Sequence record: ON000910.1
DNA: 64,000 nucleotides
Direction: 5' to 3' (one strand)
Positions 7,531 to 63,703 of this stretch are shown in pieces. The notes beneath the pieces were generated by a model. The model had not been told where the DNA came from. It made no database searches and was given only the letters and a program-made list of their open reading frames with translations. A program made the position numbers and the translations under genes. Positions within the stretch are counted from its first letter, which is position 1, and each line of letters begins with the position of its first letter.

Positions 7531-10224
7531 ATGTACGAAAGACTTAAACGTGACGGCGATTGGCTATTAATCTTTCGCCATGATTCAACAGGAGGTGTGT
7601 TTTTCACCTCCGATGCTGAAGCACGCAGCGTCGGGACAGATCCCGACGTTGAACAAAAATTCAGTGCGTTGAACTCACTTGAGGAATTTCGCCGTGAAGA
7701 CGGCAAATTCCAATTCAAGCTTCATTACCCAGAATTAGATGTAACAAACATTTGGAAGCAAAGCAGTAACTTTGCAGCTATTGATGTAGGTCAATATCTT
7801 ACAAACGGTAACTTAGCGGGTGGGGAATACGTCACTGAACAAAATGCAAAAATCGGTTCTTGGGTTATTGTTGAGAAAGAAAACCCAGGGTCATCAAAAT
7901 ACGTCGTTGAGCAACCGACTGCGGCACTAGAAGATCAATTACGTTTTCAAGTTCCACAATCACGTTTACTACCAAATAAAACATATACATTATCATGTTG
8001 GGTTGGGTATGAAGTAGACACTGATCACGATACGGCAGCTATATTTCACGCTCGTTGGTATGATGGTTCAAATAATGACTATACATTAGGCGAACATACT
8101 GCGGGTGATGTGTTTGAATCGGCAGGAAACGAGTTGATAGTTGACGGGATTCTTTGGAAGCGTCATTATGCTCGTTTCACAACGCCTAGTACTCTTTCAT
8201 CGAGTAGCATGTACTGGTATTGTTGTTATACAACTGATACAGGTAAATTACCAACAGGTAAGCGTTGGCTTACAAACTTCATGATTACAGACTCGCAAAT
8301 CGTCAAAAACTATACTGGCGATTACGACGCTACAACTCGCGGCGTTAGAGGCTATGAACCGATTTACATCGAAAGCACTGCAAATGATTGGGGTGGAATA
8401 GAATATAGCGTTTCAGCCAGTACGTTAGCAGACGGTTCAGTTGACATATCAAATTGGTATTGGGCTATTGGTGCAAAACGTTCTTGGCCAGACGCGACTA
8501 CTACATTCCCGGGACCTGGTATAAACGTAAATCAAGCTGAATTGTGGGTATATGCTCCTGTTGGTTCTAGAATCGGTGAATATGAAGTATCAGCTAGGCA
8601 TATCAGAGATTTTTCAAATAATAATATCAGACTGTTAGCAACAGGGGTCGCGGACGGAAGTTCAAACCTAGCATCATGTTATATAAACGATGTTAGCGTA
8701 TTCACACCCGAAGCTAAACAACAATATCAAGTTCGTTTGATTATATTCAACGACGATATGACAGTCAAAACTAATAGAAAATATCTTCTGAGTAGTTCTA
8801 CAGAACGTAGCAACTTCATCAACGGTCTGAACGGGTTAACAACAGAGCCGTTTGTTATTCTATCAAATGGGTCAATGTACGCAGATTCTGCGGTAGATGC
8901 TGCAATTCAACAGTATCACCCGATTGAGTATCGCGGTAGCTCTTACTTCAGTCAATACAGTTATAGTTACTGTGCATTCGGTACAGGTCAATTAGGTATT
9001 GTATATGATCGTTGTATGTTCGACCATGAATCTGATGGTGACAGTGTTGTTGATACTGCATTCGAAGATAAAGCAGGGATTGGTTCAAACGGGTACGGAA
9101 TTCCTCTAATCGAAACAATGACTGTTCCTACTGATACACGTCAACTTCTTTCAGATTATGGCGTGATAGACGGACAGTACTTGATTTACAAAGCTCGTGC
9201 ATGTATTGATCGAAATTCAGCAATCGCAAATGAAGACAAAATGGCGAATCTTCGATTCTACAACGTAGTTGGCGATGAAGTCGGCAGGCAGAATATTCAT
9301 TTTTACAGTGCAGAGAAAAAAGAAACTCAAGAATTTTTCGTACAAGTACCAACAGGTGCAGTTAAATTTGCAGTTTGGTCTAACTTACAACCAGAGTACT
9401 TTGATTACGTCATATTGACTAAAGGCGGAATGTCAACCCCGAGTGGTATACCTCATATGATTTCGAACATAAACGGTATCGCTGCTCAAGAGATTGTCAA
9501 TTCACCGATTACAGGTAACGTAGTTGATGACGATAGCTGGTGGCGAGCATATAACGCAGATTCAAACTTGTATGCAGGTATTAATATGCCAGTACAAGAA
9601 ATTGACAACGTTCAATGGGGTAATTATGTGCTTTCAGGCGGTGAAAAGTGTTTCACACGTACAGCAGGCTCATCATCTCCGATTGAAATGCAAGAAGTAT
9701 CAATCGACCCATCTCGACCATACTTCTTATCGTTATGGGTTAATGCTATAGACAAGCAAAATAGCTTCTTATATTTCAGTGTACGTGTCAAGAATTCATC
9801 TGGTGACTATAGAACTCTGAGATTATCAGACGGTAGTCGAACATCTACATATATCAATGTTGACAGAGTGTACGGGTTTCCTGCTTCAAACAATCAATGG
9901 GTTTTATTGCAGGGGTATATTCTACCACATGATTGGACAGATGCACAACATCAAGCGTTTGCTGATAAGTTTAACAACTATTTCGGTGTAATAAACCCAG
10001 AAGATGATCCGACATATCAGACATCAAAGGGTGTAGGTTATTACACCACAAACGCAGACAAGTCTTTTAGATGGAATGCTGATGATGATAAGTTGATACT
10101 TCGATACAAAGATGAAACAACCGTTGAAAATCAAGTAATGTGGGCTTTCCCAATTGTTACTGAAGTCAATGTTGCTAGTTCGTTTGAAGACAACTTCACT
10201 GCAATCGACTTTGCAATGAAATAA
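7531..10224 (+). CDS. gp35: Long tail fibre hinge gp35, with large N- and C-terminal extensions
   Basis: Central region (about aa 360-640) follows T4 gp35 (NNIRLLATG...LSDYGVIDGQYLIYKA...LRFYN...VQVPTGAV.F); directly after gene 34. Confidence 0.8.
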   Translation: MYERLKRDGDWLLIFRHDSTGGVFFTSDAEARSVGTDPDVEQKFSALNSLEEFRREDGKFQFKLHYPELDVTNIWKQSSNFAAIDVGQYLTNGNLAGGEYVTEQNAKIGSWVIVEKENPGSSKYVVEQPTAALEDQLRFQVPQSRLLPNKTYTLSCWVGYEVDTDHDTAAIFHARWYDGSNNDYTLGEHTAGDVFESAGNELIVDGILWKRHYARFTTPSTLSSSSMYWYCCYTTDTGKLPTGKRWLTNFMITDSQIVKNYTGDYDATTRGVRGYEPIYIESTANDWGGIEYSVSASTLADGSVDISNWYWAIGAKRSWPDATTTFPGPGINVNQAELWVYAPVGSRIGEYEVSARHIRDFSNNNIRLLATGVADGSSNLASCYINDVSVFTPEAKQQYQVRLIIFNDDMTVKTNRKYLLSSSTERSNFINGLNGLTTEPFVILSNGSMYADSAVDAAIQQYHPIEYRGSSYFSQYSYSYCAFGTGQLGIVYDRCMFDHESDGDSVVDTAFEDKAGIGSNGYGIPLIETMTVPTDTRQLLSDYGVIDGQYLIYKARACIDRNSAIANEDKMANLRFYNVVGDEVGRQNIHFYSAEKKETQEFFVQVPTGAVKFAVWSNLQPEYFDYVILTKGGMSTPSGIPHMISNINGIAAQEIVNSPITGNVVDDDSWWRAYNADSNLYAGINMPVQEIDNVQWGNYVLSGGEKCFTRTAGSSSPIEMQEVSIDPSRPYFLSLWVNAIDKQNSFLYFSVRVKNSSGDYRTLRLSDGSRTSTYINVDRVYGFPASNNQWVLLQGYILPHDWTDAQHQAFADKFNNYFGVINPEDDPTYQTSKGVGYYTTNADKSFRWNADDDKLILRYKDETTVENQVMWAFPIVTEVNVASSFEDNFTAIDFAMK

Positions 10225-10248
10225 AAGAGCCCTTCGGGGCTTTTTTTA
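10225..10248 (+). terminator. Intrinsic terminator after gene 35
   Basis: GAGCCC-TTCG-GGGCTT stem with UUCG loop, then a T run. Confidence 0.88.
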
Positions 10249-10251
10249 TAC

Positions 10252-10343
10252 GCGAAGCGAAAAACGGTAAGAGGCGGAAAAATTCCGTCTCATCTTAGTA
10301 GTATTAGTGGTTTTAGTGATATTAGAAGTATTAGAGGGATTAG
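10252..10343 (+). repeat. Hairpin plus 6x TTAG (9-bp period) element, copy 1
   Basis: GCGAAGCG at 10252; hairpin 10271-10291; TTAG at 10295, 10304, 10313, 10322, 10331, 10340. Confidence 0.95.
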
Positions 10344-10344
10344 T

Positions 10345-10374
10345 GTTTAAGCAACCAATGATGAAATGTATACT
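10345..10374 (+). promoter_or_regulatory. Putative promoter GTTTAA-N18-TATACT upstream of uvsY
   Basis: -35-like GTTTAA 10345-10350; -10 TATACT 10369-10374. Confidence 0.6.
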
Positions 10375-10392: not shown

Positions 10393-10806
10393 ATGAAGCT
10401 ACAAGATTTAAAAATTGAATATCACGAAGACGTGAAAATTGACACAACTGCTTTAGAAACAGCAGCTATTCGAATTCCCGTTCTTCATGCGAAGTGGCTT
10501 GCATACCGAGCCGATGCAAGACAACTACTTATCAAAGCTGAAATGAAAATGGAAGCTGTGAGAAAAGACCGCTGGCTCTTTTATAGCGGCAAACATGACG
10601 ATGAAGTTTGTGATTTCATCGTAGAAAAGAGTGAAATGAAATATGCTCTTGCGGGTGATGAATATCTTCAACGTGCAATTGCTACTTTTCAACACATGAA
10701 AGATGTGTTATCATTCATCGAAGAAGCTTTGAAAGGCATTAGTCAAATGGGCTTCACAATCAAACACATTATTGACAACAGAAAAATTGAGAGTGGTATA
10801 GTATGA
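10393..10806 (+). CDS. uvsY: Recombination mediator UvsY
   Basis: MKLQDL...EDVKIDTT.LE..A..IP.L.AKW...YSGK...KSEMK...GDE; 137 aa as in T4. Confidence 0.93.
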   Translation: MKLQDLKIEYHEDVKIDTTALETAAIRIPVLHAKWLAYRADARQLLIKAEMKMEAVRKDRWLFYSGKHDDEVCDFIVEKSEMKYALAGDEYLQRAIATFQHMKDVLSFIEEALKGISQMGFTIKHIIDNRKIESGIV

Positions 10807-37509: not shown

Positions 37510-37597
37510 TTTTTGTTCCCTTGTATTGTAAATGAACATAGCTTACTACTATTTATAGCAATACAAAGAAACAGAGAGGGAATGTCTTTATGTGTTA

Positions 37598-37627
37598 ATA
37601 ATAGCAAGCATATTCATGGTATTAAAC
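37598..37627 (-). promoter_or_regulatory. Putative promoter GTTTAA-N18-TATTAT downstream of repeat copy 2
   Basis: Minus strand reads CGTGTTTAATACCATGAATATGCTTGCTATTAT. Confidence 0.55.
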
Positions 37628-37639
37628 ACGTATTTAATA

Positions 37640-37732
37640 CTAATCATACTAATACTTCTAATATCACTAAAACCACTAATACTACTAAGATGAGACGGAA
37701 TTTTTCCGCCTCTTGCCATTTCTTCGCTGCGC
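37640..37732 (-). repeat. Hairpin plus 6x TTAG (9-bp period) element, copy 2 (inverted)
   Basis: CTAA at 37640, 37649, 37658, 37667, 37676, 37685; 37649-37714 is the exact reverse complement of 10269-10334. Confidence 0.95.
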
Positions 37733-37738
37733 TAATAC

Positions 37739-37769
37739 AAAAAAAAGGGTGAGAAATCAATCTCACCCG
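37739..37769 (-). terminator. Terminator after the short tail fibre genes
   Basis: Minus strand: GGGTGAGA-loop-TCTCACCC followed by a T run. Confidence 0.82.
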
Positions 37770-37808: not shown

Positions 37809-39236
37809 TTATGCAGTTCTTTCCCACATGTAAACAGTATAGTATGGCTGTACGTTATTATGTGGTTGACCACCACCTTCTGGTGATGAGTAATACAAGT
37901 AGTTGTCGTTATCAGTGCGACCTGAACCTGGGTTGCTTCTACCATATTCGTATGCAACTCCAAACCCTAGTCCGTTGCCACCGTAAGTCCAACGATCACC
38001 CCAACCCGCGTGTTTGTGAGTTGGCATTGTTTCTTCAGTTAAGATAACTTCGTATTCACCACCTGTTTGTCTTACGTTGAATGTTCTACCACCATGTGTA
38101 CCTTCAGATACAAGCACGCGACCTTCTGCAATTCTAGACCATGTTCCGCCGAATAGCGTAGCTGGTGATGTAGATTCAAGTGACATGTAAATAGCACCAA
38201 CAGGGTACATATTCAACATAGCTGATGATTCAATCAGACCATTTGTCATTAACTGAGTACCACTTACAGATTGAACATCGTCAATTTTCAATGTACCAGT
38301 TACTGTCCCGCCTGAAACCCCAATCTTTTCATTATTCAACTTATAACCCATTGCAGCACTTAGTGCTTGAGTCGCGTCGTTTGTTGTTAGATTGTTTGCT
38401 AGTTTCGCAACACCGACACGTGAGCTAGTCGCAGTGAATAAATCTAATGTACCGACTGTGACTGCATGGTCATTAGATGTACGCGCATTTGCAACTGTTG
38501 AGTTCGGTAGATAGAAACCTGCCTTTCTCGTAGTTGTCGCTGTGCGTTCATTGAATCGATACGGTGAAATTGCTAGATTGTTTTCTGATGCTGATGTGCT
38601 GTTTACTTCAGTTGCATTTGCTAATCGAATCAACCCTTTCGTCGTTTCTGTAGCATCTGATGCGGTAGTATTCGCCCACACGTCAAGCATTTCCTTAACT
38701 CGCTGTGGGGTCATCGCTACGCTATTAGATAATGTACCAGTCGTCGTTGCTTGTGCATATGTCGCTAGCCGTACAGCACCCGGCGAAGATTCAGTTGCAT
38801 AGAAACGAGTATTCAACGCGTAGTTCAATGTTTTAAGCGTGAATGCATGTTTCTGTGCTTCTTCTACTGCGGCTGTCGGGTCAATGTTATCAATCGTGCT
38901 GTTTGTAATCAGCTTCACAAAACCGTATTGAAGTTCTGTTGCAGTCGCGTGATTTTCCATCCAATAATTTAATGCAGATGGTGTCACCGCGCTTGTGTTA
39001 TTAAGCTCATCTGCGACTGCTGCATTATCACTTAACAATGTAATACCCGCGACAGATGTTGATGCTATAGGGTAATCGGGTAATGGTTGAAGTGCATGAG
39101 CTTGTACAAGCTCAAGACACGTTTGGAGATCGTTATTACCCCCAGTAAGACCATCAAAGGAAGTACCTTCGACTTCAACTGTAACCGTACCCGCATCGTC
39201 AATCACGTGATTGAAAATTTGAGTTCCTTTGCTCAT
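37809..39236 (-). CDS. gp12: Short tail fibre gp12-like, paralogue B
   Basis: ATETTKGLIRLA repeats, collar YPVGAIY...P..LFGGTW, His motif PTHKHAGWG, PHNNVQPYY.VY.W.R. Confidence 0.85.
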   Translation of the reverse strand: MSKGTQIFNHVIDDAGTVTVEVEGTSFDGLTGGNNDLQTCLELVQAHALQPLPDYPIASTSVAGITLLSDNAAVADELNNTSAVTPSALNYWMENHATATELQYGFVKLITNSTIDNIDPTAAVEEAQKHAFTLKTLNYALNTRFYATESSPGAVRLATYAQATTTGTLSNSVAMTPQRVKEMLDVWANTTASDATETTKGLIRLANATEVNSTSASENNLAISPYRFNERTATTTRKAGFYLPNSTVANARTSNDHAVTVGTLDLFTATSSRVGVAKLANNLTTNDATQALSAAMGYKLNNEKIGVSGGTVTGTLKIDDVQSVSGTQLMTNGLIESSAMLNMYPVGAIYMSLESTSPATLFGGTWSRIAEGRVLVSEGTHGGRTFNVRQTGGEYEVILTEETMPTHKHAGWGDRWTYGGNGLGFGVAYEYGRSNPGSGRTDNDNYLYYSSPEGGGQPHNNVQPYYTVYMWERTA

Positions 39237-52767: not shown

Positions 52768-53127
52768 ATGGAATTTCTTCTACCTGTTTTGCCAATTATT
52801 GGCATGTTTGTAATATTACTTCTAATTCTAGCAGTGTCTTTCTTCATGGCGAAGATTTTCAAGCTAGACATTAAACTACCTTACGGTAAAATCATCACTG
52901 CTGCACTTCTACTCACAGTTGCTGCGAGTGGTTTTAAAATTGCAACGTCGCCAATTACTCGTCCTACCATGAACGAAGCAGTCAACGACACAGCCAAGTA
53001 CAAAGTAGACGAATTCACTGAGCTTGAAGCACCTGTACTAGAAGACAAGTCATTCAAAGCTGAAGATGTTGATGTTACTACGCTAGACAGCGAAGAGCGT
53101 ATCAAAAATCACACTAAGAACTTGTAA
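52768..53127 (+). CDS. Hypothetical membrane protein
   Basis: Two hydrophobic N-terminal segments then an acidic tail; AAGGA RBS. Confidence 0.7.
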   Translation: MEFLLPVLPIIGMFVILLLILAVSFFMAKIFKLDIKLPYGKIITAALLLTVAASGFKIATSPITRPTMNEAVNDTAKYKVDEFTELEAPVLEDKSFKAEDVDVTTLDSEERIKNHTKNL

Positions 53128-53899: not shown

Positions 53900-55117
53900 T
53901 TACCCTAGGCTCACTGTTGAACCGTCTAATGCCGCAGCCCCTGCGAGACTAAGCGTTGCGCCACCACCGTCATCACTAATTGATGACGCCGAACGTGTAT
54001 AAGACGAACTAACGCTTTCTGACATCGAGCCACCGACTGTTATTGTGTAATTACCGCTGATATTCTGCGTGTAATCGCCCGTGACGTTACTTTGAACATT
54101 CCCGCCCACAGTTTGATTAACATTCCCGTCAACGTTCTGTGTGACGTTCTGATGCACTGTCTGACTAACATCTTTATCAACTGTTTGAGTAACATTCATT
54201 TCAACATGCTGATCAACATTACCCTTAACATGCTGCTTCAAATCACCATCAACTTGCTGCGTGACATTTTGCTGGCAATAGAACGTCGCGTCACCGACAA
54301 CGGTTATATTCAAGTTCCCTTTGATAAAGACATTCTGATCTTTTTGAACAATCTCAAAATCATCACCAACAATCTTTGTAACTTTACTGCCGTCAGGGTG
54401 AATTTCTTCAAATGTACCTGTTCGATGATACGTATGTAAACGCTCTGCACCCACAGTGTCATCAACCTCTCTGATGTGCCCAGATTCAGACTCGTGTACA
54501 TGATTGAACGGGTACTGCGCTGCGTACGGCGTCTCTTTCTCGTTATAAACGGGACCGTTTTGATTATATCCCGCAATCGGAATGTCTTTCTCTTCGGCTG
54601 CGCGTTTACTAGCGATTATTTCATGTGGTCTATACACATAAGGCGCATCGCCACTATCAAAATCGCTCTGAGATTGATTTTCATCATACACATCGGGATC
54701 TACATCGTTTCGAGCTAAACGGTTTGTATCGGGCTCATTAAGTTTATCAGCTAACGGGTATTTTTCGTTTGGGTCATTAAACCCCTTACTGCCGTTAGCT
54801 AATTCTTCAGGTATACCAGGCAAAACACCCATCGCAATTGCATCTTGATGCAACTTATCTCTGAAAAAGCCGAATACCCATGTACCTTCAACTACCCCTA
54901 TTGGTGTATTACCAATCCCGTTCATTGCAGCGTTATCAAGCGACTGCATAGGGTGAACCCAAAGAAGTTCTTCAGTTCGAATACCTTGATTTGAACTTTT
55001 CTTCTCGGGGTGAAACCCAATCATTCTGACTTTAATTCTACCGAGTTTGAGTGGGTCGTTTGTTCTATCTTCAACAACACCAGTCCACCAATCAAACCCA
55101 TCTAATCCCATAAACAT
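53900..55117 (-). CDS. gp5: Baseplate central spike gp5 without a lysozyme domain
   Basis: OB-fold GVVEDR.DPLKLGR..VR..G.H; YPFNHV.ESESGHI.E.DDT.G.ER; octapeptide beta-helix repeats; only 405 aa. Confidence 0.93.
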   Translation of the reverse strand: MFMGLDGFDWWTGVVEDRTNDPLKLGRIKVRMIGFHPEKKSSNQGIRTEELLWVHPMQSLDNAAMNGIGNTPIGVVEGTWVFGFFRDKLHQDAIAMGVLPGIPEELANGSKGFNDPNEKYPLADKLNEPDTNRLARNDVDPDVYDENQSQSDFDSGDAPYVYRPHEIIASKRAAEEKDIPIAGYNQNGPVYNEKETPYAAQYPFNHVHESESGHIREVDDTVGAERLHTYHRTGTFEEIHPDGSKVTKIVGDDFEIVQKDQNVFIKGNLNITVVGDATFYCQQNVTQQVDGDLKQHVKGNVDQHVEMNVTQTVDKDVSQTVHQNVTQNVDGNVNQTVGGNVQSNVTGDYTQNISGNYTITVGGSMSESVSSSYTRSASSISDDGGGATLSLAGAAALDGSTVSLG

Positions 55118-56968: not shown

Positions 56969-58101
56969 TTAATCAATCCCTCAATATCACCAAAGAACGA
57001 ACCAGAGTTTGTATTACTACCACTAGCCGTTTGCGTTCCACTGTCATAACCTCGAACATTACTGTTAAGATCGCGTTGATACATAGCACGATCAAGTGGG
57101 ATAAGTTCGCTAAATGTAATCTCAAGTTCAATACCCGCTGGGTCACCAGCCGTACCTCTAAATGTGCGCCAGTACTGATCGGGTGTACGATTTAACTTCA
57201 CAGATGTGATACCCGCTGGACCGAAAATAAAGCGAGGTGTGTATCGCGTCGCGTCTGTGTCTGACACTTCTTCAATCATCCATACAGGCGGAGTTTTCAA
57301 TAACGTCGCGTATTTCGCAAAACCTGCTGCAAACCCCGAGCCTAAATTTGCTGTCCCTGTATCTAATAACTGCGAATCAATCTGACCTTTCACTGGTAAC
57401 GATAGCCCATAGAACGTTTTTATAATCTCTGCAACTACTTTCAGTTCGTCTAACGACTTAGGGTGGAATTGATATACCATTGTTTGTGTACGCTGCGCTG
57501 TACCTTTATACGCAGTTACAGTTACGTTGTCTGTTACGACGCTGCTGTTCTTCTCCAACTGCCCTGCTGCATTCGATTGAATGAATGAACGTTTAATCTG
57601 AGCTAGTGTTGCACCTGCTGCTGTCGCAACTGCACGTTTACCACGATCAACGCCTTCAGACACTGTATCTGAGCCTGCTGCTGAAGCCGCACTAGCAAGA
57701 AAGTCATTTAATACTGAAGTCGGTGTTTTATCATATTCGTGAGACACTTCTTCAACGATATTAGGCGCGTAAAGTGCAAGCGTAGCTTTCAATTCGCTTG
57801 GAACTTCACCAGATTGTTCATTTTCAGTTTGCGCGGCAGTAAACGAACTACGCATGTCCGTATAGTGTTGTTTTGTTGTGTGTGCCAAGTCATACGCTCT
57901 AAAAATAAAGAAATTCGGGTGTCCAGACTCAGCCCCTAAATTAAGCGGGTATGTCAATGCTACATTATTCGAGTCACGACCGAGTTTAGTAACATCTTCA
58001 CCTGTCGAAAGCTCTTGTGTAGTACTTTGAACTCCTCCTGATATTGTTTCTACTAGAGTGCTACTTTTTGCAGCGATTGTACTAGTAAGACTCATTTTCA
58101 T
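56965..58101 (-). CDS. gp48: Baseplate tail-tube cap gp48
   Basis: YKGT..RTQ...Y.F.PKS.DEL..V..II.TF, FGPA.ITSV.LN.TPD, I.LEITFSEL. Confidence 0.82.
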   Translation of the reverse strand: MKMSLTSTIAAKSSTLVETISGGVQSTTQELSTGEDVTKLGRDSNNVALTYPLNLGAESGHPNFFIFRAYDLAHTTKQHYTDMRSSFTAAQTENEQSGEVPSELKATLALYAPNIVEEVSHEYDKTPTSVLNDFLASAASAAGSDTVSEGVDRGKRAVATAAGATLAQIKRSFIQSNAAGQLEKNSSVVTDNVTVTAYKGTAQRTQTMVYQFHPKSLDELKVVAEIIKTFYGLSLPVKGQIDSQLLDTGTANLGSGFAAGFAKYATLLKTPPVWMIEEVSDTDATRYTPRFIFGPAGITSVKLNRTPDQYWRTFRGTAGDPAGIELEITFSELIPLDRAMYQRDLNSNVRGYDSGTQTASGSNTNSGSFFGDIEGLIK

Positions 58102-58128
58102 GATCTCCTTTTTAAAAATATATATCTG

Positions 58129-58150
58129 TATTTAGATGCGATACTAAATA
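58129..58150. promoter_or_regulatory. Divergent late promoters (TCTAAATA on -, ACTAAATA on +)
   Basis: Minus 58129-58136 for the 48-53-27-5 operon; plus 58143-58150 for the 4-2-54-26 operon. Confidence 0.65.
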
Positions 58151-58168
58151 TATGAAAGGAGGCGCTAC

Positions 58169-58624
58169 ATGGCATATTCTGGAAAATTTGTTCCGTCGAA
58201 CAAGTCGAAATACAAAGGCAATTATCAAAAGATTGAGTATAGAAGCTCATGGGAATTGTCGTTTATGCGTTGGTGTGACAACAACCCACACGTAGTTCGC
58301 TGGAATTCTGAAGAGATTGTAATCCCATATGTTAGTTCTGCTGATGGAGGGAAAAAACGTAGATATTTTATGGACTTTTACGTGAAGTTCAGTGATGGGC
58401 GCGAATTTATATTTGAAATTAAACCGCACAAAGAAACGATGCCGCCTGAGAAGCCACAGAGGCTTACTGAAAAGGCTAAGAAACGTCTTTTAAAAGAAGT
58501 GTATACGTTTCAAGTGAATCAAGATAAATGGGCTGCTGCGATTAAATTCGCAAAGCAGAAAGGTTGGCAATTCAAAGTCTTGACTGAACACGGACTAAGA
58601 AAATTGATAGGACTGAGAGTGTAA
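58169..58624 (+). CDS. gp4: Head completion nuclease gp4 (TnsA-like)
   Basis: MAYSGKF.P.N..KY.G....I.YRSSWE...M.WCD.NP.V..W.SEE..IPY...RYF.DF...EIKP.KET. Confidence 0.95.
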   Translation: MAYSGKFVPSNKSKYKGNYQKIEYRSSWELSFMRWCDNNPHVVRWNSEEIVIPYVSSADGGKKRRYFMDFYVKFSDGREFIFEIKPHKETMPPEKPQRLTEKAKKRLLKEVYTFQVNQDKWAAAIKFAKQKGWQFKVLTEHGLRKLIGLRV

Positions 58625-58625
58625 T

Positions 58626-59222
58626 ATGGCTAGACCAGAAAGAGCAAAGAAGAAAAAAGAAAGTTTGCTTGATAGTTTCAAAGCTCAAACGCACGAGCTT
58701 GGTCGTCAACCAGTCGCGAAGAATCAACGCAAATCATTAGCATGGTTCAAAAAGCGTGTTCATGATGCAATACGTAGTCGAAAAGTACAGCGACCACACA
58801 AAGGCAACATGTATGTATTCGCATATGATGCTAAACACAAAGACAAACTTCCGTATTGGGATAAATTCCCGTGTATTATTTGTCTCGGGGTCGAAAAGGG
58901 ATATATGTTAGGCTTGAACTTGCACTACATCCCACCGAAAGATCGCGAGAAGTTTTTAACAATTTTACTACGATACGCAACTACAAAAACAGTAAGTAAC
59001 ACAACTCGACTATCGGTTGATTGGGGTCGAGTGAAAAACATTAAGTTCAGTAAACATATGGTTAAATTGTACATTCTAAAGCGAATTAAAGGTTCACTTG
59101 AAGAAGTCAAACCACATGATTGGTACAATGTTATTCACATGCCACTACAGCAATTCGTTGCTAAAAATGGTCGTAACATTTCTGCTGTTCGTGCGTACGA
59201 TGATCGTTATAGAAGGAGATAA
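58626..59222 (+). CDS. gp2: DNA end protector protein gp2
   Basis: G.MYVFAYDAKHKDKLPYWD.FP.II.L....GLNLHYIPPK.R...PLQQF. Confidence 0.95.
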   Translation: MARPERAKKKKESLLDSFKAQTHELGRQPVAKNQRKSLAWFKKRVHDAIRSRKVQRPHKGNMYVFAYDAKHKDKLPYWDKFPCIICLGVEKGYMLGLNLHYIPPKDREKFLTILLRYATTKTVSNTTRLSVDWGRVKNIKFSKHMVKLYILKRIKGSLEEVKPHDWYNVIHMPLQQFVAKNGRNISAVRAYDDRYRRR

Positions 59223-59225
59223 CGA

Positions 59226-59972
59226 ATGGCAATCGGTATTGACGTTAAAAAGTTCTTATCTCAGATCAATAAGAACGATTTAGCAAGACAAAACTTGTAT
59301 GCGGTGCGTTTTGCATCGCTGCAAGATACAGCAAAGCAGTTAATGAACACTGGTGAAACGTTCTCGAATGCTGCATCGACTAGAGTAAACGGTATCGGGG
59401 TTAAAGATGCATTAGCATCGACTGCTGCGTTATTCGGTAGTGGGTTTGAATTCGAGCGAAACATCGGGATGATGGTTAAATCAGTAAATATACCTGGGTC
59501 ATCATATGAAACAGATATTGATAGATCGAGAAGACGTCCGCATCATGTAATCAAAACGAAAACTGATGAAACGGTAACGATGTCGCTGTATCTTTCACCA
59601 TCACACCCCGAGCGTAAAATGCTATTAGGTTGGTTCAAACAGATTTATTCAAACGATTCTGCACAAGTCGGGTTCTTCTCGAATTACGCACGCACTATCG
59701 AGATTTACACGTACGACCGCAACGCGAACATGGTTACTATGACCAGTTTAAAAAATGCGTTTCCTATTCGAGTAGGTGGGGTTCAGTTGGGCTATGAAAA
59801 TAGCAATGCAGTTGCCGAATTCGAGGTTGAATTTGTTTACGAAAGTGCAACGTACATGACTGAAGATTTATCTAGCACAATCGCAGACACGTTAGATATA
59901 ACACAGAATTTCGAAAAAACATATAACAGCATTTACAATACTGCGGCAGAAACATTTCCAAACTTATTTTAA
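59226..59972 (+). CDS. gp54: Baseplate tail-tube initiator gp54
   Basis: DLAR.NLY.V.F; tube-fold SVNIPG...AFPI.VG.V.L.Y...N.VAEF.V.F.Y. Confidence 0.8.
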   Translation: MAIGIDVKKFLSQINKNDLARQNLYAVRFASLQDTAKQLMNTGETFSNAASTRVNGIGVKDALASTAALFGSGFEFERNIGMMVKSVNIPGSSYETDIDRSRRRPHHVIKTKTDETVTMSLYLSPSHPERKMLLGWFKQIYSNDSAQVGFFSNYARTIEIYTYDRNANMVTMTSLKNAFPIRVGGVQLGYENSNAVAEFEVEFVYESATYMTEDLSSTIADTLDITQNFEKTYNSIYNTAAETFPNLF

Positions 59973-59984
59973 GGCAAAAATATC

Positions 59985-60833
59985 ATGACAAAACCATTTG
60001 ATTTGAGCGTACTTGCTGCGCCTCAATATACTGTAAAACTACCATCTACTGGCGAAGAGATCAAGTTACGTGCCATGCTTGCAAAAGAGCATAAAACACT
60101 GTTGATCGCTAACGAATCAGATGAAAAGGTTGATGCAATCGAGCAATGTCTTGAAAACTGTATTGTTTCAGACATCAAGATTGAAGATCTAACGGTTGGT
60201 GATGCTGAATACTTGTTCATGCACATGTATATGAATAGTAATGGCGTAACTGAAATTCAAGCGGAATACAACTGCTGTGCAGATAAGCCAGAAGAAGAAC
60301 TCAAGCAGCTAGACGCGCAAGAAGAAGCTGAACTTGAGAAATCTGCTGATGACTTGTTCGCAGAAATTGTCAATCAATCAAACGAAGAAGCAATCGAAGC
60401 AGTATTCGCACCTGACAAGCGCCTATGTGGTGAACGAATCACCGCAAATATAGACTTAAACGCTGCGTTTGTGCCTGCATTCACGGGTGAAGATACAGTT
60501 CGTGTTAACAAACAAGTATTAATCAAACTGCAACACCCGAATATTCGCGTGTATGAGAACAACGACCCTAACACACCTGAAGGTCTGTTCAATATTGCTG
60601 TTGAATCAATTAAAGAAGTTCACGTTGGTGATACTGTGTACAGCAAAGAAGAGCTTGCAGCACAAGGTCAGTTGATCAATATCATGGGTGAACTAGACAC
60701 TGCTGCATTCAAGAAAGTTCAAACTTTCGTCGATGCAGTACCGCGAATCACCACTTATGTTGACGTTAAATGTCCTAAGTGTGGTAACGCAGAGAAAGTA
60801 ACTCTACGAGGCATCGAAGATTTTTTCGTATAA
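59985..60833 (+). CDS. gp26: Baseplate hub subunit gp26
   Basis: Y.VKLPSTG..I.LRAM..KEHK.LL, L...D.EYLF, P.I...V.V.CP.CG....V.L.GI.DFF. Confidence 0.9.
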   Translation: MTKPFDLSVLAAPQYTVKLPSTGEEIKLRAMLAKEHKTLLIANESDEKVDAIEQCLENCIVSDIKIEDLTVGDAEYLFMHMYMNSNGVTEIQAEYNCCADKPEEELKQLDAQEEAELEKSADDLFAEIVNQSNEEAIEAVFAPDKRLCGERITANIDLNAAFVPAFTGEDTVRVNKQVLIKLQHPNIRVYENNDPNTPEGLFNIAVESIKEVHVGDTVYSKEELAAQGQLINIMGELDTAAFKKVQTFVDAVPRITTYVDVKCPKCGNAEKVTLRGIEDFFV

Positions 60834-61000
60834 TGCTCGGTAGATACTCACTCGAAGAGTATTACAAAGAAAACTTTGCCATGATCACTCATGGCAATTT
60901 TTCGCTATACGATTTAGAGACAATGGTTCTATTCGAGCGCGAAATCTATGCCGCACAGCTTATACATCACATCAAAGAAAAGAATAAGGAACAACAATAA
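60833..61000 (+). CDS. gp51: Baseplate hub assembly catalyst gp51-like (55 aa)
   Basis: Hand-translated: MLGRYSLEEYYKENFAMITHGNFSLYDLETMVLFEREIYAAQLIHHIKEKNKEQQ; YY.NF.M..H..FSL.DLE.M..FEREIY motif; TAATG-coupled on both sides. Confidence 0.78.
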   Translation: MLGRYSLEEYYKENFAMITHGNFSLYDLETMVLFEREIYAAQLIHHIKEKNKEQQ

Positions 61001-62973
61001 TGGCGGCTGATGAAAAAAAGATGAATGAGATAATCGGAAGATTAGATCATTTGATTCTCCAACAAGAAGACCGACCTGAAGTTTACACGATGCAGCGTGT
61101 GGCTCGTCATATCAACAACATTGATATAACAACGTCAACGATGCTCGAAACAATGCAATCGGTCTTCAAAACTAACGAAAAGGCAGTTGCACAACAGAAA
61201 AATCTATTTCAGCGCGTTATTGAAAACTTCGAACAGACATCAAACAGAGTCCGCGCTTCGATTATATCACTAACTGATATCATCAAAACTACTTTAGATT
61301 TCAAAGGTCACTTGTCTAGAATTGATCGCGGTATTCAAGAGATGCGATTGACTGCAAAAATGCAGTTTGCTCGTATGCAGGAGGGGTTTACTCGATGGTT
61401 TGAACGACTGATCTTCAGAGTCAACGACATGAAGCGAATAATCGGGCTTCAGAAGACGACTGCCGACGATTTAAATAGTTTCTTAACGAACGGTGCGGGT
61501 AACAACTCTCCGCTTACTGTGGGCTTTATAAGCGCGTTATACAAGAAGATATTTGCATATCAAGTCGTTACTGATACTCGTGCTCGTAAAACTGAGCAAT
61601 TTCGTTACAAAGAAAACATGAAAGTGCAACGCAACCAAGCGAGTGATCTACGTCGAATCGCGAATCACCTAACAGGCGAAAAGCTAGGGTGGATTGCCAA
61701 GTTGTTTAGACTAGTTGGTGTAGGTCTAGTAATGCTAGGCGGTCAATTAGTAACGTTTTCAACATCTATGGCAGCGGCTGCATCAACGGCTAGTAAATTT
61801 GGTAAACTAGGTCGAATCGCTTCAAGCATTCTCTTAGGGTTTGGTAAGTTTAGCCAAGGGACGGGTAAAATCGTTCAAGATCTTGCAACTGACATGAGAG
61901 GCACGGTCAAAAAATGGATGTGGGCAGTTGTTCGTCAAACATTCTTAGGACTAGGTCGTATGATTTCAATCATGTTAAACCCAATCGCATTGGCTGGTAT
62001 GCTTGCGGGTTATGGTATTTACAAGTTATTTGAAGAAGAAATCGACCGAATCTTCGTTGCATTGAAGAGTATTTTCAGTGACCCCGAAAAACGGGAAATG
62101 TTGTTTAATATAGTGTCGAACTGGTTTAGCGATATGGTTCGAGGTATCGGAGAATGGTTCGGTATTGTCAGTGAAAATATTCAAGAAGCAGTACCAGAAG
62201 GTGCAGTTGATGGAATTGTATCTGGCTTCAATGCAGTGACATCTTTCGTTAAGAAAGCTTTCCGAATGTACGTTAATGCAATTAACAAAATCATAGCTGG
62301 TTGGTTATCAATTCCTGATTCGTTTAGATTGCTTATGTTAGCAATAGATGACTTGATGTTAAACGTTAAATCATTCGTAGTTGATGCATTAGATGCATTA
62401 CCAGACTGGATGCGTTCAGAAGGCATGGACAAGTTCATAGCCGATGCTGACATTGAAGGTAAAAGAGCGAAACTAGATGCTGACAAAGCTGAAGTTCGTG
62501 AAAGACTCAATGCGCGTTATCAAACAGACTATCTAGGCAAAGCTGGGGATATGATCGTTGATGGGGCTAAGAATACAGCACAAGCGGTTATAGACGGTGC
62601 TAAGAACGCTGCTGATGCTATCAAAGACCCTGCTAAGAATTTAGCAACGTCTGCCGAATCTCTTGACAAGTTCTTGCAAGCTGAAGTTGAGAAGAAGCAA
62701 ATAGCAGAAGACGCAATTGTAGCGGCTGAACGTCAACGTATGATCAATGAGGGGATCATTAAGCCAATGCAAGAAGTTAAGCGTTCAATCATCTTAGAAG
62801 CTGTCGCAGCGCGAGAAGCAGCATTCCGAGCAGCACAGCAAACGAAAGAGGTTGGAACTAACTTCGTGAACAATGCGGTCAATTCAGTTCAGAATACAAC
62901 GAACTTCAATAGACCGTTAAGCGTAAACAGTGAAGCGAAAGTGCCTTCACCAAATAGAAGAACGGTGAATTAA
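61000..62973 (+). CDS. gp29: Probable tape-measure / baseplate hub gp29
   Basis: 657 aa, long helical, two hydrophobic segments; follows genes 26 and 51. Confidence 0.65.
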   Translation: MAADEKKMNEIIGRLDHLILQQEDRPEVYTMQRVARHINNIDITTSTMLETMQSVFKTNEKAVAQQKNLFQRVIENFEQTSNRVRASIISLTDIIKTTLDFKGHLSRIDRGIQEMRLTAKMQFARMQEGFTRWFERLIFRVNDMKRIIGLQKTTADDLNSFLTNGAGNNSPLTVGFISALYKKIFAYQVVTDTRARKTEQFRYKENMKVQRNQASDLRRIANHLTGEKLGWIAKLFRLVGVGLVMLGGQLVTFSTSMAAAASTASKFGKLGRIASSILLGFGKFSQGTGKIVQDLATDMRGTVKKWMWAVVRQTFLGLGRMISIMLNPIALAGMLAGYGIYKLFEEEIDRIFVALKSIFSDPEKREMLFNIVSNWFSDMVRGIGEWFGIVSENIQEAVPEGAVDGIVSGFNAVTSFVKKAFRMYVNAINKIIAGWLSIPDSFRLLMLAIDDLMLNVKSFVVDALDALPDWMRSEGMDKFIADADIEGKRAKLDADKAEVRERLNARYQTDYLGKAGDMIVDGAKNTAQAVIDGAKNAADAIKDPAKNLATSAESLDKFLQAEVEKKQIAEDAIVAAERQRMINEGIIKPMQEVKRSIILEAVAAREAAFRAAQQTKEVGTNFVNNAVNSVQNTTNFNRPLSVNSEAKVPSPNRRTVN

Positions 62974-63509
62974 TGAAAAACTTAACGATGAAGAATAATT
63001 TCCGAATCGACATTCCTGATAATAACGCAACTCAAGCGTTTCAGTGGCAGATACAAACTGCCACTATCCCGGGTGTTACGATGGAAATTGCAAGCATTAC
63101 TCGTGGTCCGAAGTATGCCAAACTAGCAAATAACCATGTTGCAGGTTCTGGTACATCATATGACGATCTTTCGATCCAATTCCTAGTCGATGAAGAAATG
63201 CGTACGTATGCAGAGCTGTATAGATGGTTGATCACAATGAACAACCCAACAGGTGCTAGTACAAGTGACGGGATTGTTCCAGTTACTATGCTTCTACATG
63301 TTCTAGACAACAACAAAGATAAAATTGTAGCAACATATCGTTTTGTCAATGCATTCCCAAAGTCACTCAGTGCTGTAGAATGGAACTATACTGAATCTGG
63401 TGATGTTGAAGTCGTAACTTGTGATGTCGAATTTGAATACTCATATTTTGAAATGATTCATAAAGTCGATGGCAAAGAAGAAGTCATAACACCCTATATG
63501 GGTTCATAG
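62973..63509 (+). CDS. gp3: Tail tube terminator gp3
   Basis: NF...IPD......F....Q....PG......G....YDDL.I.FLVDE.M..Y..LY.W...AFP..LS. Confidence 0.9.
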   Translation: MKNLTMKNNFRIDIPDNNATQAFQWQIQTATIPGVTMEIASITRGPKYAKLANNHVAGSGTSYDDLSIQFLVDEEMRTYAELYRWLITMNNPTGASTSDGIVPVTMLLHVLDNNKDKIVATYRFVNAFPKSLSAVEWNYTESGDVEVVTCDVEFEYSYFEMIHKVDGKEEVITPYMGS

Positions 63510-63518
63510 AAAGCAATT

Positions 63519-63543
63519 AAGCCCCTTACGGGGCTTTTTTTGT
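63519..63543 (+). terminator. Terminator after gene 3
   Basis: AAGCCCC-TTAC-GGGGCTT followed by a T run. Confidence 0.85.
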
Positions 63544-63556
63544 ATCTGAATCTAGA

Positions 63557-63651
63557 GCGAAGCGGCAGAATTTGGTGTGAGGCCCAAAAATTGGGCATCA
63601 TCTTAGTAGTATTAGTAGTTTTAGTGAAGTTAGAGGTATTAGTAATATTAG
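63557..63651 (+). repeat. Hairpin plus 6x TTAG (9-bp period) element, copy 3 (diverged)
   Basis: GCGAAGCG at 63557; hairpin 63579-63599; TTAG at 63603, 63612, 63621, 63630, 63639, 63648. Confidence 0.93.
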
Positions 63652-63673: not shown

Positions 63674-63703
63674 GTTTAGAAACCACCAGATCTGTCGTAT
63701 AAT
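63674..63703 (+). promoter_or_regulatory. Putative promoter GTTTAG-N18-TATAAT upstream of gene 1
   Basis: -35-like 63674-63679; -10 63698-63703. Confidence 0.62.

Follow-up and report, generated by a model that had tools for sequence, protein, structure and literature searches.

What does a small hairpin followed by six phased TTAG repeats do in the gaps between genes of KVP40-like vibriophages? The question is raised by a stretch of 64,000 nucleotides from sequence record ON000910.1 (the window), and in particular by its positions 63,557 to 63,651, which hold one copy, here called c3, of a cassette that occurs six times in the genome of phage ValKK3. The window belongs to Vibrio phage XZ1; its final 2 kb are 100% identical to XZ1 (at the same coordinates) and to ValKK3, and about 82% identical to KVP40. 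With genomes of about 248 kb, XZ1 and ValKK3 belong to the KVP40-like myoviruses of the T4 type (genus Schizotequatrovirus); in the ValKK3 annotation, c3 has gene 3 (tail completion) on one side and gene 1 (dNMP kinase) on the other. Weighing the features described below, we consider it most probable, at roughly 30%, that the cassette acts as a sequence-defined start site of the kind known from T4 ori(uvsY) and ori(34).

The cassette is about 100 bases long, a small hairpin followed by six 9-base TTAG repeats. Its complete layout is a left motif, GCG-N-AGCG, a 12-nt spacer, the hairpin, an invariant TCATC and six units of the form TTAG-D-R-N-D-N. Aligning the three copies of the window gives a common order of elements: the motif GCGAAGCG comes after the intrinsic terminator of the preceding gene and is followed, some 12 nt further on, by the hairpin, then by ATC and the array of TTAG units, with promoter-like hexamers before the next gene. 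An earlier note on this DNA had counted these three copies; the whole ValKK3 genome contains exactly six full cassettes, three of them beyond the window, and no partial or decayed copies. From c1 to c6, they are located between gp35 and uvsY, between gp12 and wac, between gp3 and gp1, between ORF386 and a lipoprotein-type ORF, between a SprT-like and a glutaredoxin-like gene (followed by gp24 and gp55), and between ORF126 and ORF125, beside a DNA methyltransferase. Three of the six fixed loci are inside the conserved late-gene block. The flanking genes are co-directional at all six, with the cassette oriented in the same way. The gaps between successive cassettes are 45, 43, 26, 26, 53 and 55 kb, and a minimum gap this large among six random points has a probability of P = 0.007.

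The cassette is specific to KVP40-type (Schizotequatrovirus/Mylasvirus) phages, in which it is orientation-locked and non-coding and is present in six copies. Around 50 related vibriophage genomes have four to six cassette places each, mostly five or six. The same six loci are occupied in KVP40, VH7D, nt-1 (genus Mylasvirus) and K566, and five of them in F86; further copies were recovered from 1.081.O (three), from locus c3 of QD01 and VS2, and from environmental sequences (three). In all relatives from which copies were recovered, the loci are syntenic. Between ValKK3 and KVP40, the cassette is 93% identical, compared to 82% for the neighbouring genes. In the gp3/gp1 gap of 1.081.O (locus c3), the cassette is tandemly duplicated (L126:236-336 and L126:399-502), the second copy having a weakened stem with GTGGTGGAA as its 5' arm.

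In the search for wider homologues, the scan of IMG/VR returned cassette copies only from KVP40 and VH7D, and loose pattern scans found unrelated coding repeats. One further IMG/VR candidate (L277) was rejected, being located inside an ORF of 295 codons. A metagenome scan gave three real copies (L180, L204 and L209) among 119 loci. Most of the other 116 matches (among L141-L259) belong to one unrelated, very widespread sequence with the same 19-mer, TCATCTTAGTAGTATTAGT; in marine and other contigs, it is found just past the stop codon of a conserved gene and is followed by a rho-independent terminator. Intermediate relatives useful for a deeper covariation analysis were not found, with uvsY homologues falling from at least 80% identity to less than 40%.

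In each copy of the window, six TTAG units follow each other at an exact 9-nt period (nine pattern matches, 0 expected). For comparison across genomes, 40 distinct copies of 81 nt were aligned, without gaps. The TTAG motif, described earlier as invariant, is so inside the window and in units 1 and 2 of all 40 copies, while units 3 to 6 also occur as TTCG, TTCA, TTTG and TTAT. The drift ascribed to the 5-nt linkers is restricted: only purines occur at unit position 6, C is absent from positions 5, 6 and 8, and TAG(T/A)A, the first linker, is nearly fixed. The ten junction bases TCATCTTAGT are the same in all 40 copies, and all keep the 9-nt phase. The proposed selection on TTAG periodicity thus finds support in every copy, but the unit holds information beyond TTAG. 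In K566, TTCG replaces TTAG in two units of all six copies (loci L128, L410 and L414-L417). Five of these have it in units 3 and 4, both reading TTCGAGATA (in one copy the fourth reads TTCGAGTAA), and c1 has it in units 4 and 5. A core base of the repeat has here changed in concert in copies far apart from each other, which hints at a reader that would be co-evolving with the repeats.

The composition of the tract is strongly asymmetric. Its sense strand contains 2.3% C against 22.9% G, and the ValKK3 arrays make up five of the six longest runs in that genome that are free of any one base. A C-poor sense strand would be expected of a strand that acts, or is exposed, in single-stranded form; it is not expected of recognition as a duplex. 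A long G.U-rich RNA hairpin formed by the array of copy 3 folding back on itself was considered and discarded as a conserved structure, since it is absent from the 40-copy consensus and from the DNA and antisense folds. Paralogous cassettes within a genome are 0.75-0.83 identical, equal to or above the 0.69-0.74 of orthologues between distant genomes, a sign of concerted evolution of the cassettes.

The hairpin exists in two main forms. Type A, with arms GAGGCGGAA-AAA-TTCCGTCTC, starts at 10271 (+) and 37712 (-), and the window has two exact occurrences of its 21-mer GAGGCGGAAAAATTCCGTCTC, one at 10271-10291 (+) and the other at 37692-37712 (-), where 0.01 are expected. Type B, at 63579-63599, reads GAGGCCCAAAAATTGGGCATC, with arms GAGGCCCAA-AAA-TTGGGCATC; it is predicted in both RNA and DNA folds and is also present in ValKK3 c6 (52958), outside the window. 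As reported before, two adjacent G-C pairs of copies 1 and 2 (6/16 and 7/15) are C-G in copy 3, which keeps the stem length, the AAA loop and the following ATC and TTAG units. Creation of type B took four substitutions, restoring two pairs. The imperfect pair, previously taken to be the same in all three, has moved by one position: copies 1 and 2 have G4.T18 with G3-C19 paired, while copy 3 has G3.A19 with G4-C18 paired. The G.A mismatch of type B results from a second change in its 3' arm, TC to CA, which also occurs alone, in many copies with a GG/CC core.

The larger alignment that the earlier note asked for bears out the covariation of these two pairs and adds no others. Both-sided changes are limited to 6/16 and 7/15 and to five of the 40 rows (ValKK3 c3 and c6, VH7D c6, KVP40 c3 and F86 c5), all with TTGGGCATC as the 3' arm; c3 of QD01, VS2 and nt-1 has the ordinary core. 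Because the five rows share this arm, and arms about 10 nt apart travel together, they can be taken as one old allele, and repeated sightings of the variant are therefore not independent events. The compensatory variant is real, and is best read from these sequences as tracing back to about one event, an old allele that would have moved between loci by gene conversion. F86 c5 is type B with two additional transitions, both giving wobble pairs, so that its stem is kept. Pairing is found in 86.7% of the cells of the nine-pair stem, compared to 82.4% after shuffling of the columns; the RNAalifold consensus is reduced to the six inner pairs, and its covariation term amounts to -0.23 kcal/mol only.

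Other copies depart from the stem. Three stems are broken or replaced: metagenome copy L180 has no stem, its 5' arm being of the variant and its 3' arm of the ordinary form, F86 c1 has four pairs only, and in F86 c3 the stem is replaced. In K566, a TT-to-AA change gives c1 a loop of seven A, and c5 has a TTA loop. The claim that selection acts on pairing therefore keeps real but thin support: two pairs covary and a 6-bp core stem is conserved, with about one event behind the covariation and three stems lost, which weakly favours such selection. The stem imperfections in the alignment are 26 G.T and 17 G.A cells, against 6 A.C cells, meaning that the sense strand folds better than its complement. 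Among the forms first proposed, cruciform, single-stranded DNA or RNA, the small hairpin, which is real, thus leans towards RNA or displaced sense-strand DNA; a symmetric cruciform would be less favoured, given the ratio of G.T to A.C.

Selection on coding had been discounted from the beginning, and this is borne out by 29 copies, in which none of the frames begins at a consistent start codon or keeps its end. TAG stops interrupt one of them at intervals of 9 nt; in the remaining two, a consistent start is missing and the ends differ between orthologues. A leader peptide in the TTA-GNN-NNN frame was considered, as this frame overlaps the downstream start codon (ATGA/GTGA) in c1 and c3 of the window and likewise in c4 of ValKK3; it was rejected, the overlap being lost in c1 and c3 of KVP40. 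An intrinsic terminator is located directly upstream (15-35 nt) at four of the six loci, and a conserved early-type promoter (GTTTAR or TTGACA, 17-18 nt, TATAAT-like) 0-27 nt past the array at five; c1, c2, c3 and c5 are preceded by a terminator as well as followed by a promoter-like pair. In KVP40, ValKK3, nt-1 and K566, the array of c4 provides the Shine-Dalgarno sequence (AGGAG) and extends right up to the start codon; with no promoter in between, the mRNA at this locus must include the array. The ORFs that precede c4 and c6 continue across the left motif and end at the hairpin or shortly before it, which means that the cassette is certainly transcribed at these two loci. The final residues of these ORFs (ValKK3 245934-245936 and 53037-53039; same in KVP40, nt-1 and K566), (E/K)-K-S-E-A, come from the left motif, and at c4 the stop codon is formed by the first three bases of the hairpin. 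By eye, no convincing match was seen to CRISPR repeats, DnaA boxes, IHF sites, sigma-E, sigma-54 or sigma-28 promoters, or RNase E or RegB sites.

The features of the three cassettes in the window and their immediate neighbours are listed in the table. The promoter before gene 1, which KVP40 and nt-1 have conserved, adjoins the cassette and lies outside the repeat. Outside the window, at ValKK3 57781-62539, a cluster for 7-deazaguanine synthesis (QueC-like, QueF-like, GTP cyclohydrolase I and QueD-like) is found 5-10 kb from c6, near a DNA methyltransferase. The start of the window maps to ValKK3 130663 and window position 62000 to ValKK3 191309; from these two positions, XZ1 and ValKK3 differ by an insertion or deletion of about 1.35 kb within the window.

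Table. Positions in the window of the cassette elements c1 to c3 and of adjoining signals.
Copy	Feature	Position	Strand	Remarks
c1	Intrinsic terminator of gp35-like tail-fibre ORF 7531-10224	10228..10248	+	GC stem AGCCC/GGGCT, T-run
c1	Left motif GCGAAGCG	10252..10259	+	Motif recurs in 4-5 of 6 loci
c1	Hairpin, type A	10271..10291	+	9-bp stem with G.T, AAA loop; RNA fold -11.6 kcal/mol
c1	ATC junction and six TTAG units	10292..10343	+	9-nt period
c1	Promoter-like pair GTTTAA / TATACT	10345-10350 / 10369-10374	+	uvsY ATG at 10393
c2	Intrinsic terminator after gp12-like short-tail-fibre ORF 37809-39236	37747..37768	-	8-bp stem, T-run
c2	Left motif variant GCGCAGCGAAG	37722..37732	-	
c2	Hairpin, type A	37692..37712	-	Same as c1
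c2	ATC junction and six TTAG units	37640..37691	-	
c2	Sigma-70-like promoter	37598-37625	-	Downstream of array
c2	T4-type late promoter TATAAATA	37550-37557	-	Downstream of array; wac (fibritin) follows
c3	Intrinsic terminator after gene 3 (ORF 62973-63509)	63519..63543	+	
c3	Left motif GCGAAGCG	63557..63564	+	
c3	Hairpin, type B	63579..63599	+	Two core pairs C-G, G.A at pair 3/19; RNA fold -8.5 kcal/mol
c3	ATC junction and six TTAG units	63600..63651	+	Sense strand C-free, 57-nt run
c3	Sigma-70-like early promoter TTTAGA-17-TATAAT	63675..63703	+	10/12 matches; before gene 1, ATG 63741

Phage T4 offers the closest functional model. It has at least five active origins, which fire with transcription, and two of them, oriF and oriG, are units of about 100 bp made up of a middle promoter and an A+T-rich unwinding element (PMC3016281). 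The gap that separates a late structural gene from uvsY holds the oriF unit, which is primed by the transcript of uvsY; c1 is found in the corresponding gap. Like the T4 R-loop origins, the cassettes are intergenic, around 100 bp long, co-directional with transcription, provided with an easily melted repeat tract and present several times per genome. The arrays contain 70-76% A+T, compared to 58.8% for the genome, over the approximately 50 bp expected of an unwinding element. Each is a local minimum of duplex stability within 500 bp on either side, or is at most 16 bp away from it, and ranks among the top 0.01-0.6% of 54-bp windows in the genome. In the oriF gap of T4, an inverted repeat lies just before the -10 and direct repeats are found in the leader, a layout that loosely parallels the cassette. 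In the sequence of that gap, between gene 25 and uvsY (L420:2822-2905), these are CACGT/ACGTG, an inverted repeat of 5 bp that comes after the Mot box and before the -10, and a 10-nt direct repeat, CCAATAACAA, present twice.

Transposing the T4 mechanism to the cassette, the hairpin and the invariant junction would mark the site or help to open it, and a weak, conserved -10-like TAG(T/A)AT after the hairpin may serve a phage-modified RNA polymerase. The TA-rich, C-free repeat tract would be the easily melted unwinding element. Its sense strand would stay single, either displaced while the other strand forms an RNA-DNA hybrid, or covered by a multimeric factor that binds single strands and sits on the phased TTAG motifs, and the open tract would then prime or load the replisome in the direction of transcription. 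Promoter activity, R-loop formation and origin firing, as well as the existence of the binding factor, are what we infer from the arrangement. Counted in favour of such a start site are the even spacing, the six syntenic loci, the orientation, the low duplex stability, the depletion of C, the imperfections that are benign on the sense strand, the position of c1 before uvsY, the absence of MotA and the conservation above that of the neighbouring genes. KVP40 and nt-1 have AsiA and no recognisable MotA (PMC2988021). For a persistent R-loop or autonomous replication, the one-sided depletion of C would be indirect evidence only.

Several observations weigh against a start site. Easy melting is not confined to the cassettes, as 91 regions of the genome melt as easily as the weakest array. 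No demonstrable promoter was found upstream of or inside the cassette, the best candidate being a 4-5/6 match to a -10 without a -35, and no MotA (Mot) box, TGCTT, was found at the right distance reading into it; in this, the cassette and its MotA-less phage differ from the T4 R-loop origins. The recognisable sigma-70-like promoters are located downstream of the array, and their transcripts lead away from it. T4 origins share no sequence motif (PMC3016281), whereas the six cassettes are near-identical repeats, so there is no direct precedent for a repeated origin sequence in the family. The cassettes do not coincide with strand switches or skew extremes, and the coincidence with uvsY concerns one locus out of six. 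In the literature, no transcriptome, origin map or R-loop map was found for any cassette-bearing phage. A start site is nevertheless our preferred explanation, and we tentatively propose that the six cassettes could be KVP40-type origins, or MotA-independent middle-mode sites doubling as origins, with a putative multimeric single-stranded DNA or RNA factor reading, and co-evolving with, TTAG.

Other initiation signals were compared with the cassette. The iterons of oriE in T4 likewise consist of short direct repeats in phase and are associated with a possible origin, but kinship is rejected: they are 24-nt repeats coding for the C-terminal domain of gp5, while the non-coding TTAG arrays repeat every 9 nt and show no sequence relationship to them. 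The counterpart of the oriE iterons in the window is a set of 24-nt tandem repeats at 54156-54260, in a gp5-like tail-lysozyme gene (ORF 53900-55117, - strand); should any part of the window be a positional homologue of a T4 origin, these repeats are that part. Single-strand initiation (ssi) sites and hairpin promoters, such as the complementary-strand origins of G4 and phiX174, plasmid ssi sites and the promoters of the N4 virion RNA polymerase, have in common with the cassette a small hairpin with a 3-nt loop and an orientation-dependent action on one strand. The left motif contains GCGAAGC, known as the classic, very stable DNA mini-hairpin. However, the cognate enzymes of those signals are not evident here and the signals have no phased repeat tract. 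The hairpin geometry (5-7 bp, 3-nt loop) would fit an N4-type promoter, but the ValKK3 annotation contains no giant polymerase gene: the largest gene has about 1,400 codons, leaving no room for an N4-like virion RNA polymerase, and the phage uses the T4 gp55/gp33 system. The lambda nut site (boxA and boxB) similarly combines a linear motif, a spacer and a short GC stem with an A-rich loop, oriented with transcription. It differs in being located downstream of a promoter and upstream of terminators, whereas four of the six cassettes come directly after a terminator and before a promoter. There is no similarity to boxA, no known N-like factor here and no repeat tract in nut.

Possible, though improbable in our estimate, is an RNA element, in which the 5' hairpin would nucleate an oligomeric, perhaps hexameric, RNA-binding factor on six phased UUAG sites, or in which the repeat tract would form a ribosome standby or leader region. 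Either would affect the stability, processing or translation of the downstream message, on a read-through or polycistronic mRNA. Ring proteins such as TRAP and HutP read phased UAG triplets. In its favour, the array runs into the Shine-Dalgarno sequence and start codon at c4, and the upstream ORFs enter the left motif at c4 and c6. Wobble-preserving changes (U.G and G.U in F86 c5, and G.U alternating with G-C at pair 4/18) also point to RNA, as does the lack of C: C-free RNA cannot make G-C pairs, and the consensus fold leaves the tract unpaired. At most loci the flanking signals speak against it, with a terminator 15-35 nt upstream at four of the six and a promoter between array and gene at five, so that the main downstream transcript would omit the cassette. 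The downstream genes have no common functional theme, and an RNA element does not predict the even genomic spacing. No Rfam family matches the window at the gathering score, and at E<=10 matches are at chance level and centred on the upstream terminator and flanks.

A duplex operator or iteron array, bound cooperatively on its 9-bp repeats by a small phage DNA-binding protein, perhaps with a dimer on the inverted repeat as well, and serving as a promoter switch or insulator, is unlikely. Contiguous short direct repeats are typical of operator or centromere sites, and ribbon-helix-helix proteins bind tandem 7-11-bp repeats cooperatively. The phased direct repeats with position-specific conservation that such a site calls for are present (six units in exact 9-nt phase, with information in the unit beyond TTAG). 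At five of the six loci, the -35 of a conserved early-type promoter directly adjoins the array or follows it at 0-27 bp, and the TTCG in two units of all six K566 copies is what a co-evolving trans-acting reader would be expected to produce. Other features speak against it. A fixed spacing between array and downstream -10 was looked for and rejected, the distances being about 72, 74, 85, 95 and 99 bp, out of helical phase, and c4 has no promoter. The 10:1 excess of G over C at degenerate positions is strand-asymmetric, which duplex recognition does not require, and the symmetric flips in the two arms of the hairpin would alter both half-sites of a protein site, with two variants present in one genome.

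Could the cassette simply be maintained by recombination, with little function of its own? It would then be an elaborated version of the promoter-stem-loop modules PeSL (or PmSL) of T4-type phages (Arbiol 2010; Comeau 2014, PMC4122927), kept similar by gene conversion, with the hairpin variant templated or hitch-hiking, a proposal we regard as distinctly unlikely. PeSLs are likewise repeated composite intergenic modules of T4-type genomes, including the nt-1/KVP40 pair in which they are documented, with terminator stem-loop and early-type promoter flanks and recombination between copies (PMC4122927). The flanks of c1, c2, c3 and c5 have the promoter and terminator stem-loop of a PeSL. Recombination also agrees with the concerted evolution seen in the identities of paralogues and orthologues, with chimeric hairpins combining a B-type 5' arm and an A-type 3' arm (L180 and F86 c3), with the tandem duplication in 1.081.O, and with the TC and CA alleles at stem positions 18-19, which swap between the near-identical QD01 and VS2. 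However, PeSLs consist of promoter and terminator only, are numerous and are clustered in hyperplastic regions, where they mediate gene shuffling, while the cassette has an extra module of hairpin and 9-nt repeats between terminator and promoter and is found in six copies at fixed, syntenic core-genome loci. Copy number and the six positions have been stable since the split of Schizotequatrovirus and Mylasvirus, the ten junction bases and the 9-nt phase are kept in all copies, the cassette is more conserved than the adjoining coding DNA, and decayed or partial copies are lacking; together, these argue for purifying selection. The cassette is not described in the text of the PeSL paper (PMC4122927).

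Finally, a polar barrier to antisense transcription is very improbable. Here the G-free antisense array with C every 9 nt would load Rho strongly, as a rut-like site does, and with the hairpin and a bidirectional terminator behind it would stop antisense transcripts before the upstream gene block. The antisense composition (about 23% C and 2% G in six steps of 9 nt, together some 55 nt, which is near the length of RNA that a Rho hexamer wraps), the strict orientation relative to genes and the scoring of two upstream terminators on both strands are in line with it, but it leaves the invariant TCATC, the invariant UAA after each C, the left motif and the even spacing unexplained, the TTCG of K566 puts G into the antisense strand, and there is no evidence of antisense transcripts reaching these sites.

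No single model explains all observations. The cassette is most like a T4 R-loop origin or an elaborated PeSL, yet it fails the defining features of both, having no Mot box and a fixed six-copy distribution in the core genome. As far as the literature could be checked, it is undescribed: it is absent from what was found on KVP40, nt-1, phi-pp2, phi-Grn1 and PeSL cassettes, a body of literature that does not include the original KVP40 genome paper. It belongs with the repeated intergenic control cassettes of T4-type phages. For the reading of covariation in such families, it illustrates that gene conversion between dispersed copies can mimic repeated compensatory evolution.

T4 is the textbook case for the control of phage replication and transcription, yet no motif is common to its origins, and the large KVP40 branch, with AsiA present and MotA absent, has a middle-mode programme that calls for an explanation. 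A six-fold, strictly oriented cassette in about 50 sequenced, aquaculture-relevant vibriophages provides a handle on the origin or the middle-mode question. It is small enough to be cloned, mutated and used in pull-downs, with the two natural hairpin alleles and the broken-stem copies as built-in controls. If the cassettes are indeed origins, they would constitute a sequence-defined, hairpin-plus-iteron origin family in a T4-type phage.

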